This document shows, piece by piece, positions 50,619 through 56,270 of a DNA stretch of 64,000 bases. The notes under the pieces are model-generated. The model was given only the letters and a program-made list of their open reading frames with translations, did no database searches and was not told the origin of the DNA. The position numbers and the translations under genes are program-made. Every line of letters starts with the position of its first letter. Within the stretch, counting starts at the first letter, position 1. The stretch spans positions 124,001 to 188,000 of IMG/VR virus record IMGVR_UViG_3300046804_003469. One strand, written 5' to 3'.

Positions 50619-51119
50619 ATGGATAATAAAAACACTGATTACATTTCACTAAACAACCCTCAATATTTTATGGGTGGTGATGGTTGTAGTGACGATTATG
50701 CACATTTGAATTTAAGTAACTTGTATACTTATAATCTCAATAATGAAGATAAAATTGAAATTAAAAAAACTCCAGGTGAATCTTCCGCAACTATGAATGA
50801 GACTAAAAATCATCTTTGGAAATACAACGAAGACAAAATCTTGAAAGATATTCAGGATTATGTGACTAGCACTTATGGAAGTCACTATTGCGGACATCAA
50901 CAAGAATATCAAGGTGTCCAAACGATTGATTTGATGGCAGCAAAGGAACTTGCTTCAGATTTCTGTCAAGCAAATATTATTAAATACGGTTCTCGTTATG
51001 GTGATAAAGACGGACGTAGCAAGCGTGATTTGATGAAAGTCATTCACTATGCTATGCTTCTACTTCACTTCGATGGTCATTATTCACGCAAGGATAATGG
51101 TCTTACAGAATTCCGTTGA
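50619..51119 (+). CDS. DUF3310-like (putative nucleotide kinase family) protein
   Basis: KYNEDKIL...STYGSHY...QTIDL...FCQANIIKYGSRYGDKDG...DLMKVIHYA. ATG 50619 preferred over TTG 50583. Confidence 0.65.
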   Translation: MDNKNTDYISLNNPQYFMGGDGCSDDYAHLNLSNLYTYNLNNEDKIEIKKTPGESSATMNETKNHLWKYNEDKILKDIQDYVTSTYGSHYCGHQQEYQGVQTIDLMAAKELASDFCQANIIKYGSRYGDKDGRSKRDLMKVIHYAMLLLHFDGHYSRKDNGLTEFR

Positions 51120-51121
51120 TT

Positions 51122-51808
51122 ATGAAACTCAGACAAGATACTATGAAATTTTCTGATAAAACTTTAACTCTTCTTAAAAATTTTTCTTCGATTAATCAAT
51201 CAATTCTTTTTAAGAAGGGAAATTCGCTTCGCACCATTTCGGTAATGAAAAACATTCTTGCTGAAGCAACTATTGATGAAGATCTCCCTAAAGATTTTGG
51301 AATTTATGATTTAAACCAATTTCTAAATGGTCTTTCACTTCACAATGATGCTGAACTGGACTTTACAAATGACAAGTACACAATCATTAAAGAAGGTAAA
51401 AGTAGGTCGAAATACTTCTTTGCTGATCCAAATGTAATTGTAACTCCTCCCGATAAATCTATTGTTCTTCCTAGTGAAGATGTTTGCTTTCTTCTTGATA
51501 CTAAAGAATTAGATAAACTGAAAAAAGCATCAGCAGTTTATGAACTTGATGATCTTTCGGTAATCGGTGAAAATGGAGTTGTAAAACTTCTTGTTCGTGA
51601 TAAGAAGAATGAAACATCTAATGACTTCTCCGTAATTGTTGGTGAAACGGATGATACTTTTGTTTTTAACTTTAAAGTTGAAAATCTTAAGATTCTTCCT
51701 GGTTCTTATGAAGTAGTAATTTCTAAGCAACTTCTTTCTAGGTTCAAGAGTACTACCTATAGTGTAACGTATTACATCGCAATGGAACCAGACTCATCTT
51801 TCAACTGA
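51122..51808 (+). CDS. gp45: Sliding clamp gp45
   Basis: LLKNFSSINQSI, FGIYDLNQFL, YYIAMEPDS. Confidence 0.96.
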   Translation: MKLRQDTMKFSDKTLTLLKNFSSINQSILFKKGNSLRTISVMKNILAEATIDEDLPKDFGIYDLNQFLNGLSLHNDAELDFTNDKYTIIKEGKSRSKYFFADPNVIVTPPDKSIVLPSEDVCFLLDTKELDKLKKASAVYELDDLSVIGENGVVKLLVRDKKNETSNDFSVIVGETDDTFVFNFKVENLKILPGSYEVVISKQLLSRFKSTTYSVTYYIAMEPDSSFN

Positions 51809-51836: not shown

Positions 51837-52346
51837 ATGAACATCTTTGCCACTCATCCCTTTCCTGCTGAGTCTGCTATTTGTCTTCCCGATAAACATA
51901 TTGTTAAAATGCCACTTGAGTGCTGCCAAATGCTTTCCATTGTAGCATCCAAGTGGTATCATAATTATGGAGCAATTCATAAAGCAGATGGAAATCCTTA
52001 TGCAACTGAGAAAGGTGCATTCCGCAACCATCCATGTACTCAATGGGCATCACAAACAATTGATAATGCATATTGGTTGATTAAGTGGGGAATGAATTTA
52101 TGTGATGAATATGCTATTCGTTATGATAAGATTCATGCTTGTTATAACACTCTAGTTGAAGCATATTATTTGTTTCCTAAAGGTAAACTGGATAACGTAA
52201 CTCCTTTTGCTCGTGCGATGCCAGATGAGTATAAACTTGATGGCAGTATTGACACTTTTACTGCTTACAAGATGTATATCGCATCCAAACCTTGGGTTGC
52301 ATCTAATTATCTTCGTATGCCGCAACGAAAACCTGATTGGGTCTAA
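51837..52346 (+). CDS. Pyrimidine-dimer DNA glycosylase/DenV-like protein
   Basis: MNIF...DKHIVKMPLECCQMLS, NHPCTQW, AMPDEYK, AYKMY. Confidence 0.8.
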   Translation: MNIFATHPFPAESAICLPDKHIVKMPLECCQMLSIVASKWYHNYGAIHKADGNPYATEKGAFRNHPCTQWASQTIDNAYWLIKWGMNLCDEYAIRYDKIHACYNTLVEAYYLFPKGKLDNVTPFARAMPDEYKLDGSIDTFTAYKMYIASKPWVASNYLRMPQRKPDWV

Positions 52347-52349
52347 ATT

Positions 52350-52526
52350 ATGAAACTCTCTGATGATGAAGTTCTGTGGATTTCTGCTATACTTCATAAA
52401 TCTAAATCAAAAGTTCTTTCGGAATATCCTGAAGCACAATTGATTATGGATAAGATTTGTAACGAATCTGGAAAAATAGTTGCAAATAAAGCACGGAAAC
52501 TCTTAAAACTTGGTAAGTGGTCTTAA
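52350..52526 (+). CDS. 58-aa hypothetical protein (not in the ORF track)
   Basis: Hand translation: MKLSDDEVLWISAILHKSKSKVLSEYPEAQLIMDKICNESGKIVANKARKLLKLGKWS. Exactly fills the gap. Confidence 0.65.
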   Translation: MKLSDDEVLWISAILHKSKSKVLSEYPEAQLIMDKICNESGKIVANKARKLLKLGKWS

Positions 52527-52529
52527 ATT

Positions 52530-53474
52530 ATGACAAGTGAATTCTTATTCTGTGAGAAGTATCGTCCTCAAGTGATTGAAGATTGTATTCTCCCCGATGA
52601 TACTAAAAAAACATTCAAGGAGTTTGTAGAAAAAGGAGAGATTCCAAATCTTCTTCTTGCTGGTCCTCCTGGTATTGGTAAAACAACAATCGCAAAAGCA
52701 CTTTGCAATGAACTAGGAGCAGATTATTATGTTATCAATGGATCCGACGAAGGACGTTTCTTGGATACTGTACGAAACCAAGCAAAGAACTTTGCTTCGA
52801 CCGTCTCACTTACGGGATCTTCTAAACATAAAGTCATCATCATCGATGAGGCGGATAACACAGGAAACGACGTACAACTCCTTCTACGGGCGAATATTGA
52901 GACATTTTATAGCAACTGCAGATTCATCTTCACCTGCAACTATAAAAACAAAATTATTGAACCTCTTCACTCTCGATGTGCAGTCATCGACTTCACAATC
53001 AAGGGGAAACAAAAGGCACAACTTGCGGGATCATTTTTCAAGCGTCTCCAAATTATCTTGGATCAGGAAAAAATTGAATATGATCAAAAAGTCGTTGCAG
53101 AACTTGTATCCAAACATTTTCCTGATTTTCGACGTGTCCTCAACGAATGTCAACGATATTCTACAGGAGGAAAAATCGACTCAGGCATTCTTGCATCTTT
53201 CTCAGACGTTTCAGTAAATGATCTCATTAAACATCTCAAAACTAAAAACTTCACAGAAGTACGAAAGTGGGTGGTCTCCAACTTGGACAACGATCCTTCT
53301 ATCCTTTTTCGCAGGATTTATGACGCCTGTTATACTTGCCTTTCACCTCAAACTATTCCCGCTGCCATTCTTGTTATTGCTAAGTATCAATACCAATGTG
53401 CGTTCGTGGCTGATCAAGAAATTAACTTTTTAGCAGCATTGACTGAAATTATGTGTGAGTGTGAGTTTCTATGA
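52530..53474 (+). CDS. gp44: Clamp loader large subunit gp44
   Basis: EKYRP, GPPGIGKTT, IIDEAD, PLHSRC, FPDFRR. Confidence 0.97.
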   Translation: MTSEFLFCEKYRPQVIEDCILPDDTKKTFKEFVEKGEIPNLLLAGPPGIGKTTIAKALCNELGADYYVINGSDEGRFLDTVRNQAKNFASTVSLTGSSKHKVIIIDEADNTGNDVQLLLRANIETFYSNCRFIFTCNYKNKIIEPLHSRCAVIDFTIKGKQKAQLAGSFFKRLQIILDQEKIEYDQKVVAELVSKHFPDFRRVLNECQRYSTGGKIDSGILASFSDVSVNDLIKHLKTKNFTEVRKWVVSNLDNDPSILFRRIYDACYTCLSPQTIPAAILVIAKYQYQCAFVADQEINFLAALTEIMCECEFL

Positions 53475-53686
53475 ATCCTTATAAAATAGATCGCTCAAAA
53501 CTATATGAGCATCCAGTTAAGACTACTCCCGAAAATGTGAAAGAGGCAAATGAAGGTCTTTTTCGTGCTAAAATGACTCTTCCTGCTGCTGCAAAACATT
53601 GTGGTATGACGCAGAAAGAAATGAAACTCACCTTTTTTGAATACCTAAAGTATAACAAACCTGATTATGAAAACAAAGGTCACTAA
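53471..53686 (+). CDS. 71-aa putative helix-turn-helix protein
   Basis: MTLPAAAKHCGMTQKEMK HTH-like pattern; ATGA overlap with gp44. Confidence 0.65.
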   Translation: MNPYKIDRSKLYEHPVKTTPENVKEANEGLFRAKMTLPAAAKHCGMTQKEMKLTFFEYLKYNKPDYENKGH

Positions 53687-54221
53687 ACCTCACAAAAAAA
53701 ATTGGAAGGCATATTGTGAAACTGCCTTTAATAATTGTAAAGGTAGTTTGTATAACTGGGGGAAACCAGATTATTTTAGACCAATTACTCGCACCTTCTA
53801 CATTAATGTATTTGATTGTGCTGGAGCAAATCATACTGGTCTTATTAGTAAAGATGCGATTGATAGTCCTAAAGATAGAACACTTGATCACTGTCTTTCG
53901 CCGCAGTTTATTGGTAGGATGATTATGGATAATCCAGAAAAGTTTTTGAATGATTATGAAACATTTGAAAATCTTTTTTGGTTGGCATGTTCTACAATCA
54001 CAGTAACTAAAAAAGAAAATACAGCATTGAGTTTATTGACTATCAATGATGGTTATGAATATAAAGTTTCTGTTCCAACAAACTTGAAATATAATCATCT
54101 TGGAATTCAACTGTATATGAAAGTTGGAAATCGCTGGAGGGATTCTGCTCCTGTAGAATCGAATATTATTGATGCTCCAGAAGAATTGTTGGAATATGAA
54201 AAAAACTTTTTAATTTTGTAA
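53667..54221 (+). CDS. 184-aa hypothetical protein, possible degenerate His-Me/HNH-like fold
   Basis: TLDHCLSPQ ... TITVTKKEN. Confidence 0.55.
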   Translation: MKTKVTKPHKKNWKAYCETAFNNCKGSLYNWGKPDYFRPITRTFYINVFDCAGANHTGLISKDAIDSPKDRTLDHCLSPQFIGRMIMDNPEKFLNDYETFENLFWLACSTITVTKKENTALSLLTINDGYEYKVSVPTNLKYNHLGIQLYMKVGNRWRDSAPVESNIIDAPEELLEYEKNFLIL

Positions 54222-55282
54222 TGTTATTAACCGAAGAGAATGCCATTTGGGCAGCAAATCAATTCATACAATATTATTCTGATTTTAATCGTATTGACGA
54301 TTATATGAGGTTTGTTAAAAAGAGTAGAATTGAAAATTCTGTTGGAAAATTATTTGGACCTCATGATGAAATCTTTTCAGATTTTTCTTTAGATCCAAAT
54401 AATATGTCATTTGCAATTCATGAAGTTGACACAAGTTCAAAACCAAAATCAAAGTATAACCAAGAATTATACTCTGAAATTTTGAACATGACTGCATCAA
54501 ATGCTATTGAAGAAGCAATTCCAGGTAGAACTATTAAATGGATTGTTACTGAAGAAACAACTAAAAAAATTGTCGGAGTTGTTCGTTTTGGGTCTCCTAC
54601 AATTAACTCAAAACCAAGAAATGATTATTTTGGTGAAGTTCTTCCTCTTTCCACAATTAATCAGCAGTTTGTAATGGGATTTAACATTGTTCCCGTCCAA
54701 CCATTTGGATATAATTATCTTGGCGGAAAACTTCTTGCTCTTTTAGCATCATCAAATTATCTTAAAAGACAATTTGATTTGAAGTATGGAACTGATCTTC
54801 AGTATTTTGAAACTACTTCATTGTATGGAACAACAAAAGGTGTATCCATGTATGATGGTCTTAAACCTTACATCAAACATATTGGAGATACTGAAAGCAA
54901 ATTTCTTCCTTTGTTTCATGATGATTATTTTAGAGATTTATTCTGGTGGTTTAATAATAATGCTAATGGCGGAGAAAGATTAATCTCTGCAGATAAGTCT
55001 TCTAAAAAATTAAAAATACAAGTGAAAATGATTTCAATTATTCGCCATTCTCTTAAGGACGAAAATAAATTAAATGAGTTTAATGCGTGTATTGAAAAAG
55101 CAAAATCATTAACTGAAAAGAAAAGATACTATCTTTCAAAATTTGGTTATGAACCAGAAGATGTTATTGCTTGGTGGAAAGTTAAGGCATCTAAAAGATA
55201 TAATAAATTAATTCTGGAGAATAAGTTAAGAACAAAAATTGAATTATGGGAACCTGGAGTTGATTTGGAGATTATTCGATGA
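54221..55282 (+). CDS. DUF4338 (Druantia DruA-related) family protein
   Basis: IPGRTIKWIV...VGVVRFGSPTINSKPRN, IVPVQPFGYNYLGGKLLALL, ETTSLYG...SMYDG. Confidence 0.7.
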   Translation: MLLTEENAIWAANQFIQYYSDFNRIDDYMRFVKKSRIENSVGKLFGPHDEIFSDFSLDPNNMSFAIHEVDTSSKPKSKYNQELYSEILNMTASNAIEEAIPGRTIKWIVTEETTKKIVGVVRFGSPTINSKPRNDYFGEVLPLSTINQQFVMGFNIVPVQPFGYNYLGGKLLALLASSNYLKRQFDLKYGTDLQYFETTSLYGTTKGVSMYDGLKPYIKHIGDTESKFLPLFHDDYFRDLFWWFNNNANGGERLISADKSSKKLKIQVKMISIIRHSLKDENKLNEFNACIEKAKSLTEKKRYYLSKFGYEPEDVIAWWKVKASKRYNKLILENKLRTKIELWEPGVDLEIIR

Positions 55283-55422
55283 AATGTGAAGTCCAACTCT
55301 ATGTTGCTGGTACGGTTTTTTATGAAACCGTAATTGCCAGAGATTATAAAGAAGCAAAGGAAGTTGCCCTTGCTCGTAATCCTAATGCTAAAGTAATTGC
55401 TGTCACTGCGAAGTTTAAATAA
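55279..55422 (+). CDS. 47-aa hypothetical protein (not in the ORF track)
   Basis: MKCEVQLYVAGTVFYETVIARDYKEAKEVALARNPNAKVIAVTAKFK. ATGA and TAATG overlaps on the two sides. Confidence 0.75.
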   Translation: MKCEVQLYVAGTVFYETVIARDYKEAKEVALARNPNAKVIAVTAKFK

Positions 55423-55802
55423 TGGAACTGAAAGATTGGTTGAATTCGATAAATCAAACAAAAGTAAATTTAATTGATGATGATTTATCTTTAGAAAAAG
55501 AATATGCTCCATTCATCATCAATAGGTGTCTTTCTGGTCATATTGATTGTATTATGTATGCAAATGAGATGAACAGGTATAATTTTTTGCCAAAAAAGAT
55601 GCAGTATGATTTTTTTATAAATAGTCTGAGGAAAAAAAAGAGATTCTCTCCTTGGCTCCGAAAAGATCAAATCAAAGACTTAGAATGTGTTAAACAATAC
55701 TATGGATATAGTAATGAAAAAGCACTACAATCTTTGAAGATTTTAAACAAAGAACAAATCAACTTTATTAAACAACGACTTGAAATTGGCGGAAAGAAAT
55801 GA
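55422..55802 (+). CDS. gp62: Clamp loader small subunit gp62
   Basis: YAPFIINRCLS, ANEMN, QYDFFINSLRKKKRFSPW, YYGYSNEKA. Confidence 0.93.
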   Translation: MELKDWLNSINQTKVNLIDDDLSLEKEYAPFIINRCLSGHIDCIMYANEMNRYNFLPKKMQYDFFINSLRKKKRFSPWLRKDQIKDLECVKQYYGYSNEKALQSLKILNKEQINFIKQRLEIGGKK

Positions 55803-56239
55803 CTAATCAAACTATTGAACCACAAGTAAATTGGTCTCCTGAGATGATGGTGGAAGTTATTCTGAATGAACCAGATGACTTTCTTAAAGTTCGTGAAACT
55901 TTGACTCGAATCGGAGTTGCATCGAGAAAGGAGAAAAAACTCTATCAGAGTTGCCACATTCTTCATAAGCAAGGTAGATATTATCTTGTTCACTTTAAGG
56001 AACTGTTTGCTCTGGATGGTAAACATGCAAACCTGACTGTGAATGATGTTCAGCGTCGCAATCGTATTACTCGCCTTCTTTCTGATTGGGGGTTAATTAC
56101 TGTTGTAAAAGAAGAATCTATTGCAGATATTGCTCCCCTCAATCAAATTAAAGTTCTTTCTTATAAAGATAAAGGTGATTGGATTTTAGAGCAAAAATAC
56201 AATATTGGTAAAAAAGGAAAAGGTCAGGAAACCGAATGA
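55799..56239 (+). CDS. regA: Translational repressor RegA
   Basis: DDFLKVRETLTRIGVAS, LYQSCHILHKQGRYYLVHFKELFALDG. Confidence 0.98.
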   Translation: MTNQTIEPQVNWSPEMMVEVILNEPDDFLKVRETLTRIGVASRKEKKLYQSCHILHKQGRYYLVHFKELFALDGKHANLTVNDVQRRNRITRLLSDWGLITVVKEESIADIAPLNQIKVLSYKDKGDWILEQKYNIGKKGKGQETE

Positions 56240-56245
56240 TTTTGT

Positions 56246-56270
56246 AGGGAGGTCAACACCTCCCTTTTTT
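56246..56270 (+). terminator. Intrinsic terminator after regA
   Basis: AGGGAGGT-CAAC-ACCTCCCT followed by a T run. Confidence 0.85.

Follow-up and report, generated by a model that had tools for sequence, protein, structure and literature searches.

The window examined here, a whole stretch of 64,000 nucleotides of marine cyanophage DNA, spans positions 124,001 to 188,000 of IMG/VR virus record IMGVR_UViG_3300046804_003469, which is 215,027 bp long and rated 100% complete. Within it the clamp-loader genes gp44 and gp62, which are adjacent in coliphage T4, are separated by four open reading frames (ORFs), here named ORF71, ORF184, ORF353 and ORF47 after the length of their products in amino acids (aa). 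The gp44-gp62 interval is composite: ORF71 and ORF47 flank an exchangeable slot within an early replication operon, and the real unit is the pair ORF184 plus ORF353. The data fit a slot that holds a two-gene cassette, consisting of a variable DNA-targeting or nuclease-like gene followed by a gene for a DNA-modifying enzyme. The reading that we favour, tentatively and with somewhat less than an even chance of being correct, is a cassette resembling a restriction-modification (R-M) system, in which a DruA-type GNAT would take the place of Dam as the DNA modifier and ORF184 would act on unmarked DNA. The genes of the interval and its two flanks are as follows.

52530-53474, + strand: gp44, clamp-loader large subunit, core gene and left flank (PF00004 and PF21328 Gp44_lid; phrog_168, E 2e-135)
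53471-53686, + strand: ORF71, small basic protein (71 aa, isoelectric point (pI) 9.2), constant leader gene of the variable cassette (phrog_1920)
53667-54221, + strand: ORF184, variable partner of the GNAT (184 aa), no family match, homologues in DUF4338-carrying phages only
54221-55282, + strand: ORF353, DUF4338/DruA-family GNAT-fold acyltransferase (353 aa), putative DNA modifier (PF14236; phrog_19197)
55279-55422, + strand: ORF47, cyanomyovirus-wide small gene (47 aa), resident of the locus (phrog_685)
55422-55802, + strand: gp62, clamp-loader small subunit, core gene and right flank (PF16790 Phage_clamp_A; phrog_225)

Searches with tblastn matched ORF71 in 435 phage records, ORF184 in 17, ORF353 in 31 and ORF47 in 332; all four are real genes, because each has many conserved homologues. 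The 17 records with ORF184, which represent 11 phages, all fall within the 31 DUF4338-positive records, while the approximately 442 other gp44-bearing cyanomyovirus records contain neither gene. Fourteen DUF4338 records are without ORF184. The association has a Fisher p of 4e-23 on records and of about 1e-5 on a rough count of lineages, these lineage counts being estimates and the co-occurrence statistics not being corrected for phylogeny. A profile search found no ORF184 in the DUF4338-positive phages S-SM2, S-SSM7, HTVC008M, DSL-LC02 and Sf-FS3, and in S-CREM1 and Sf-CH8 DUF4338 is the only gene between gp44 and gp62. The dependence runs in a single direction: the modifier also occurs by itself, the partner does not, and such one-way dependence is a signature of R-M logic.

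The association extends to phages in which the two genes are not neighbours. In 76 fetched loci, a sample biased by the queries used to find it, ORF184 immediately precedes DUF4338, and in S-B68 it immediately follows it. The genes are far apart in S-CAM9, S-T4, S-PRM1, S-CREM1, S-SCSM2R and SynMITS9220M01, several of which have ORF184 just after uvsW. Among long uncultured contigs that include both a uvsW-linked ORF184 and the gp44 region, all three carry DUF4338 next to gp44; five short contigs with ORF184 beside uvsW (24-38% complete) and contig G003, which is without the gp44 region, carried no information on co-occurrence.

The two members of the pair differ in how much they vary. Across 46 distinct adjacent pairs, ORF353 identity ranges from 80 to 100% (median 85) and that of ORF184 from 22 to 100% (median 43), with r = 0.25; GNATs that are at least 95% identical can sit beside ORF184 proteins only 26% identical. 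Since ORF184 varies in this way beside a conserved GNAT, its alleles must be exchanged or diversifying, and the pattern is typical of conflict genes. When 96 distinct ORF184 sequences are placed in one midpoint-rooted tree, copies from the gp44 side are found on deep, diverse branches and those from the uvsW side make up one shallow clade, and at least four context changes are needed.

The slot occupied by ORF184 is filled in 12 loci of close relatives by an unrelated family of 178-209 aa, in which D60 and the E70-x-K72 motif are invariant across 24 sequences. The nearest named language-model clusters to this D..ExK family, offered as a lead only, are PDDEXK_16, DpnI, RE_Bsp6I and Endonuc-PvuII. 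The D..ExK slot protein was found by tblastn in no isolated phage. Members from other phages were in five of the six cases sampled located upstream of Dam (PF02086), with a 1-nt overlap, and one of these pairs is sited away from the gp44 locus, between thyX and the ribonucleotide-reductase (RNR) gene. The arrangements among the fetched loci are the following.

D..ExK gene upstream, Dam downstream: 15 fetched loci
D..ExK gene upstream, DUF4338 downstream: 12 fetched loci
ORF184 upstream, DUF4338 downstream: 76 fetched loci
ORF184 upstream, Dam downstream: 0 fetched loci

On the D..ExK tree, the partner must have changed between Dam and DUF4338 at least twice. The gene order in S-CAM3, namely ORF71-like gene, Dam, ORF47-like gene and gp62, matches that of the window, where ORF71 is followed by ORF184 and ORF353, then by ORF47 and gp62. 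The initial annotation had described this locus as one that often carries DNA methylases in cyanomyoviruses, and Dam does occur in the same slot of relatives; its pairing of a modifier with a nuclease-like partner is likewise the reading that the comparative data favour. No Dam, N4/N6 or C5 methyltransferase was detected in the window's complete genome.

Several further features of these loci were observed. The region just downstream of uvsW, as seen in contigs L330 (540-4522), L243, L245 and L246, is a second hot spot; relatives of ORF184 are housed there, and one contig has the D..ExK family in this place, so that the two unrelated families share both genomic homes. S-CAM3 possesses, besides the Dam gene between gp44 and gp62, an annotated type II restriction enzyme and DNA methylase directly after regA (L327, 4475-5153), which make a second R-M-like pair in one replication block. 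One Dam-cassette contig (L335, 1714-2295) encodes a 193-aa protein with a weak match to NUMOD3, a homing-endonuclease-type DNA-binding motif, between gp44 and the ORF71-like gene; this insert is absent from near-identical sister contigs. The RNR gene adjoining the nuclease-like and Dam pair next to thyX (L341, 4079-5365) shows weak matches to intein-splicing and RNR insertion domains.

The strict preference of ORF184 for DUF4338 over Dam (76 loci against none) would also suit a protein that helps the GNAT and is not a nuclease, such as a subunit for specificity or DNA recognition, a factor that supplies the donor, or a second-step hypermodification enzyme. ORF184 has never been seen without DUF4338 and has no nuclease fold match, and multi-enzyme hypermodification pathways are common in phages (PMC13219725). 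Many DUF4338 phages are without ORF184, however, so the enzyme does not need it, and a biosynthetic partner would be expected to co-evolve, yet ORF184 is 22-100% identical where the GNAT is 80-100% identical. Moreover, the same slot is filled by a D..ExK protein that elsewhere partners Dam. We consider a helper role unlikely, with perhaps one chance in several of proving correct.

ORF353 matches the DruA/DUF4338 profile PF14236 over residues 80-198 with 39.6 bits (gathering cut-off 27, E 4.5e-10), which upholds the original assignment of the protein to DUF4338, the DruA component of Druantia. The same match emerged from a whole-genome Pfam search, and all close homologues have PF14236. Only the core of the DruA profile is aligned (Pfam positions 61-178 of 297), and the match to the PADLOC DruA profile is weak (E 7e-6, positions 123-212 of 407); the N-terminal and C-terminal regions are peculiar to the phage family. 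A model obtained with AlphaFold2 from 33 diverse phage sequences has a mean confidence (pLDDT) of 79.9, and its residues from about 58 to 314 superpose on whole GNAT acetyltransferases with Z 9-9.5 over 143-187 residues (VIA-align). The top matches of the model in a Foldseek search of the PDB were all GNATs as well; a PDB sequence-profile search with the ORF353 family gave nothing useful. In the model, helices 234-295 are inserted between strands 219-223 and 302-307. The donor-binding loop QPFGxNxLGGKLL (Q160-P-F-G163, G168-G169-K170), intact when judged by the GNAT pattern Q/R-x-x-G-x-G/A, is invariant in the 33 phage sequences, as are many further polar and basic residues, and the protein has a pI of 8.85. 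The DUF4338 family comprises more than 6,000 protein clusters at 90% identity, is very abundant in ocean viromes, and includes genes of cyanophages and of a Pelagibacter phage.

The suggestion that this modifier might be GNAT- or Mom-like holds at the level of the superfamily. The GNAT fold is borne out by the model, and membership of the Mom family by sequence is rejected on the strength of an hhalign comparison of the ORF353 family profile with Mu Mom (probability 0.2%) together with the lack of a PF25680 match, at E <= 0.1 for ORF353 or at E <= 1 genome-wide; Mu Mom itself scored 253 bits. ORF353 is thus a DruA-family GNAT that does not belong to the Mom family by sequence and shares Mom's superfamily only. 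Among viral structures in BFVD its best structural neighbours are uncharacterised giant-virus proteins of 469-1260 aa, from Faunusvirus (E 2e-13), Yasminevirus and Dasosvirus. Weaker BFVD matches include several phage proteins of 400-700 aa named endonuclease-like or restriction-endonuclease-like, which hint at GNAT-nuclease fusions.

Membership in the DruA family, and the frequency with which phages carry homologues of defence genes, might suggest counter-defence mimicry, whereby the phage protein would poison or decoy the type I Druantia complex of the host. We regard this as highly improbable. It is the GNAT core alone that matches DruA (profile positions 61-178 of 297), the catalytic-looking residues are invariant, as one would expect of an active enzyme, the gene occurs in a Pelagibacter phage besides the cyanophages, and mimicry would leave ORF184 and the Dam exchange unexplained. 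A toxin-type or host-shutoff function, with ORF353 acetylating an aminoacyl-tRNA or translation factor in the manner of TacT or AtaT and ORF184 serving as regulator or antidote, is also very unlikely. GNAT toxins acting on charged tRNA do exist and are structurally close to Mom, and the basic ORF353 protein may bind nucleic acid; such toxins are, however, about 170 aa in length and are paired with ribbon-helix-helix antitoxins, ORF353 often occurs without ORF184, which for a toxin would be a lethal logic, and the way in which it changes places with Dam suggests DNA.

ORF184 and 71 diverse relatives matched nothing in Pfam, PHROG or PADLOC. An exhaustive profile search of 1.84 billion proteins yielded only 242 representatives of the family, the best 150 of which are stand-alone proteins of 56-248 aa, fragments included, with no fusions. 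The AlphaFold2 model is very confident (pLDDT 95.8; pTM, the score for the overall fold, 0.90). A structure search of the Atlas and a search of the language-model atlas each returned the protein's own family only, and a PDB sequence-profile search with the family gave no match. ORF184 is, by prediction, a confidently folded protein matching no known fold; of the two larger ORFs for which structure prediction and fold searching had been proposed, one was placed among the GNATs and the other found no fold match. Invariant residues are Y45, H75, N118, Y142 and E178; among the 71 diverse members D74 is kept in at least 90%, and H75 and N118 in all. The initial annotation had called the protein HNH-like, and these conserved residues stand; an HNH or His-Me finger nuclease is unsupported, there being no family match and, for all the confidence of the model, no match to a beta-beta-alpha-metal fold. 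H75 of the model is the last residue of a strand leading straight into a helix without a second hairpin strand, which is not the canonical HNH arrangement. The prediction of a complex of ORF353 with ORF184 gave a score of 0.00, below the mark, which counts neither for nor against binding.

Under the favoured R-M-like reading, ORF353 would be produced along with the replisome and would attach an acyl or aminoacyl group to bases of freshly synthesized phage DNA. That a GNAT can modify DNA is shown by Mom, which uses Gly-tRNA to alter adenine at N6 (PMC13219725), and we therefore propose that phage DNA is marked by ORF353 upon replication, through the same class of chemistry, reached independently. 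Phage DNA bearing the mark would be protected against restriction by the host and also against the partner protein that the phage itself encodes. ORF184, for its part, would target DNA in a modification-sensitive manner, most probably as a nuclease with a new fold, and would attack host or competitor DNA that lacks the mark; as the conflict-facing part of the cassette, its alleles would diversify and be exchanged. What the data show is the order and translational coupling of the genes, the fold and family of ORF353, the one-way co-occurrence, the diversity of the ORF184 alleles and the replacement of Dam by DUF4338, or the reverse, downstream of one and the same gene; that DNA is the substrate, that ORF184 has nuclease activity and that protection runs in this direction is what we infer.

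A number of observations weigh against this interpretation. The closest structural neighbours of ORF353 are ordinary small-molecule or protein acetyltransferases with tied Z scores, and a GNAT fold carries no information on the substrate. Mu Mom (8bv8) ranks fortieth among the PDB matches in Foldseek (E 1.3e-2), and the Mom of a Salmonella phage ranks seventh among the BFVD matches (E 8.7e-4). Our literature searches found no biochemical evidence on any DUF4338 protein, the activity of DruA included. The ORF184 model had no neighbour in the PDB by Foldseek (best E 1.2), and comparison with 48,161 PDB chains using VIA-align gave a best Z of 3.7, the SciA endonuclease of T5 reaching Z 3.5 with a root-mean-square deviation of 4.9. 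The D..ExK family is without a Pfam or PDB profile match, and its designation as a nuclease, based on the motif, the language-model neighbours and the pairing with Dam, is a lead only. S-SCSM2R carries both Dam and DUF4338, which are therefore not strict alternatives. Fifty-nine of the 77 ORF184 loci in IMG/VR follow uvsW and are not beside the GNAT, and the co-occurrence could partly reflect shared ancestry. Lastly, contig L250 has an ORF184 relative (1076-1621) directly before gp62 with no DUF4338 in the gp44-gp62 interval. This 6-kb contig, in which a 181-aa His-rich ORF precedes the ORF184 relative, is the only candidate exception to the pairing.

Some of this would be accounted for if the locus were a hot spot with unlinked cargo, ORF184 and ORF353 being independent accessory genes with a chance common ancestry within one cyanophage group and ORF353 acetylating a protein of host or phage or a small molecule. 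The location of 59 of 77 ORF184 genes at uvsW, the solitary DUF4338 between gp44 and gp62 in S-CREM1 and Sf-CH8, and the ordinary acetyltransferases as nearest solved folds would all be consistent with it, as would the diversity of other genes housed by the gp44-gp62 slot of relatives (peptidase, speD, purS, 2-oxoglutarate (2OG)-Fe(II) oxygenase-like, NUMOD3 and others). Unlinked cargo is harder to reconcile with the absence of ORF184 from every one of the approximately 442 DUF4338-negative records, with the retention of both genes through at least four context changes, and with the overlap of stop and start codons within the pair. Nor would one expect a single upstream nuclease-like family to pair with either Dam or DUF4338 and to have switched at least twice. 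On balance this explanation is improbable, though not negligible.

A bolder form of the R-M-like reading holds that DUF4338/DruA is a second, independent GNAT lineage that marks DNA bases and is able to replace Dam, with ORF184 as a new-fold nuclease that reads the absence of the mark; we consider this possible but rather doubtful. If it is true, type I Druantia would be a modification-dependent system of self/non-self recognition with DruA as its marking enzyme, and a large fraction of marine T4-like phages (more than 6,000 protein clusters) would carry an undescribed DNA hypermodification. A new base modification would affect the sequencing, the restriction and the recycling of marine phage DNA. 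A nuclease-like gene that partners either Dam or a DruA-type GNAT turns this into a concrete and cheaply testable hypothesis, namely that DruA-type proteins mark DNA. Cultured phages already exist for all three states, namely the linked pair, the unlinked pair and the GNAT by itself, so that the comparison needed is available.

The remaining two ORFs of the interval, ORF71 and ORF47, are small genes widespread among cyanophages, with no informative family assignment; they reside at the locus and do not belong to a DUF4338 module. ORF71 had been designated a helix-turn-helix (HTH) regulator. No Pfam match was found for 16 members of its family, and a profile search of the PDB retrieved only a designed repeat protein; a role as HTH regulator or controller (C) protein is therefore unsupported. 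Relatives of ORF71 with 81-90% identity precede and overlap the nuclease-like and Dam cassettes in contigs L332, L336 and L339, and an ORF71-like gene stands in front of Dam in S-CAM3. ORF47, in its 332 phage records, is found beside Dam, peptidase or DUF4338 alike, and is present in only one of the 80 loci in which DUF4338 shares 80-84% identity with ORF353. The proposal of a coupled four-gene module is ruled out by this last count and by the fact that ORF71 equally fronts Dam cassettes. Independent assortment of the genes in relatives had been named as an observation that would speak against a module; ORF71 and ORF47 do assort independently, and ORF184 and ORF353 do not. A homologue of ORF47 in DSL-LC02 (L237, 4134-4277), 94% identical, is annotated as "RNA polymerase inhibitor," a name that our data neither support nor contradict.

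The interval is part of an operon extending from gp45 to regA, the other features of which are listed here.

51116-51808, + strand: gp45, upstream end of the gp45-to-regA operon
51837-52346, + strand: denV-type pyrimidine-dimer glycosylase, between gp45 and gp44 (PF03013, phrog_624)
52350-52526, + strand: 58-aa ORF between denV and gp44
55799-56239, + strand: regA translational repressor, final gene of the coupled run (PF01818, E 1e-44)
56246-56265, + strand: terminator-like hairpin closing the gp45-regA unit (8-bp stem with 5 GC pairs, then TTTTTT)

All junctions from gp44 to regA overlap: ATGA at gp44/ORF71, 20 nt at ORF71/ORF184, TAATG at ORF184/ORF353, ATGA at ORF353/ORF47, TAATG at ORF47/gp62 and ATGA at gp62/regA. 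The coordinates and these overlaps agree with the original description of gp44 and gp62 as split by four overlapping ORFs. The first terminator-like hairpin on the + strand (56246-56265) comes after regA. The GC content of the island (0.30-0.35) matches the mean of the window (0.326), and hence it is not a compositionally foreign insert. The gap between gp45 and gp44 contains denV and the 58-aa ORF in the window and speD, a 2OG oxygenase or small ORFs in relatives, which makes it a variable slot too. S-CREM1 has an annotated glnA riboswitch some hundreds of bases past regA, on the other strand (L002, 5062-5160).

Parts of this picture are already in the literature. The GNAT core of DUF4338 was noted by Aravind's group (PMC10853773), a DruA-like fold in six Synechococcus phages, S-PRM1 among them, is described in the Phold preprint (10.1101/2025.08.05.668817), and in the paper on S-SCSM2R the product of ORF152, 46% identical to ORF353, is annotated as "methylcarbamoylase mom" from structural similarity. 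DruA-like and "mom-like" cyanophage genes are thus on record; what seems to be new is the partner gene, together with the exchange between Dam and the GNAT. Our literature searches uncovered no description of the ORF184 family, of its one-way link to DUF4338, or of Dam and DUF4338 replacing each other downstream of a common nuclease-like gene.

ORF353 resembles DruA, the signature protein of type I Druantia, in scoring above the PF14236 threshold and in matching the PADLOC DruA profile. It differs in aligning over the DruA core only and in residing in a replication operon with gp44, gp62 and regA as neighbours and not in a defence island; the complete phage genome contains no DruB-E genes and no match to the DUF1998/MZB helicase that marks DruE. 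With Mom of phage Mu (PF25680), of which R111, S124, D149 and R151 are essential residues, it shares a GNAT-superfamily fold in a phage protein, which in the case of ORF353 is only proposed to act on DNA, as well as weak structural matches of the model (8bv8 and the Salmonella phage Mom); the helical insertion between late strands of the model may correspond to the HTH-like insertion of Mom. Unlike ORF353, Mom is 231-241 aa in length and the product of a late, Com-controlled gene, whereas ORF353 has 353 aa and belongs to an early replication operon; there is no sequence relationship between the two.

Type II R-M cassettes, including those led by a C protein, and phage nuclease/Dam pairs have a similar organization, with overlapping, co-oriented genes for a leader, a nuclease-like protein and a modifier. 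As in R-M systems, the modifier can occur without the partner but not the partner without the modifier, and the partner is highly variable; as in the nuclease/Dam pairs, the same D..ExK gene is coupled to Dam in sister phages. The modifier here is a GNAT and not an S-adenosylmethionine methyltransferase, ORF184 is without a known nuclease fold, and the leader ORF71 has no detectable HTH, so that the resemblance to C-R operons is positional only. Phage T4 has DNA modified with hydroxymethylcytosine and the nucleases EndoII and EndoIV, which destroy unmodified host DNA. The enzymes are unrelated to those considered here, and the T4 base is made at the nucleotide level, in contrast to the post-replicative transfer proposed for ORF353. 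The proposed logic would nevertheless be that of T4: phage DNA would receive its mark as it is replicated, and DNA without the mark would be degraded.

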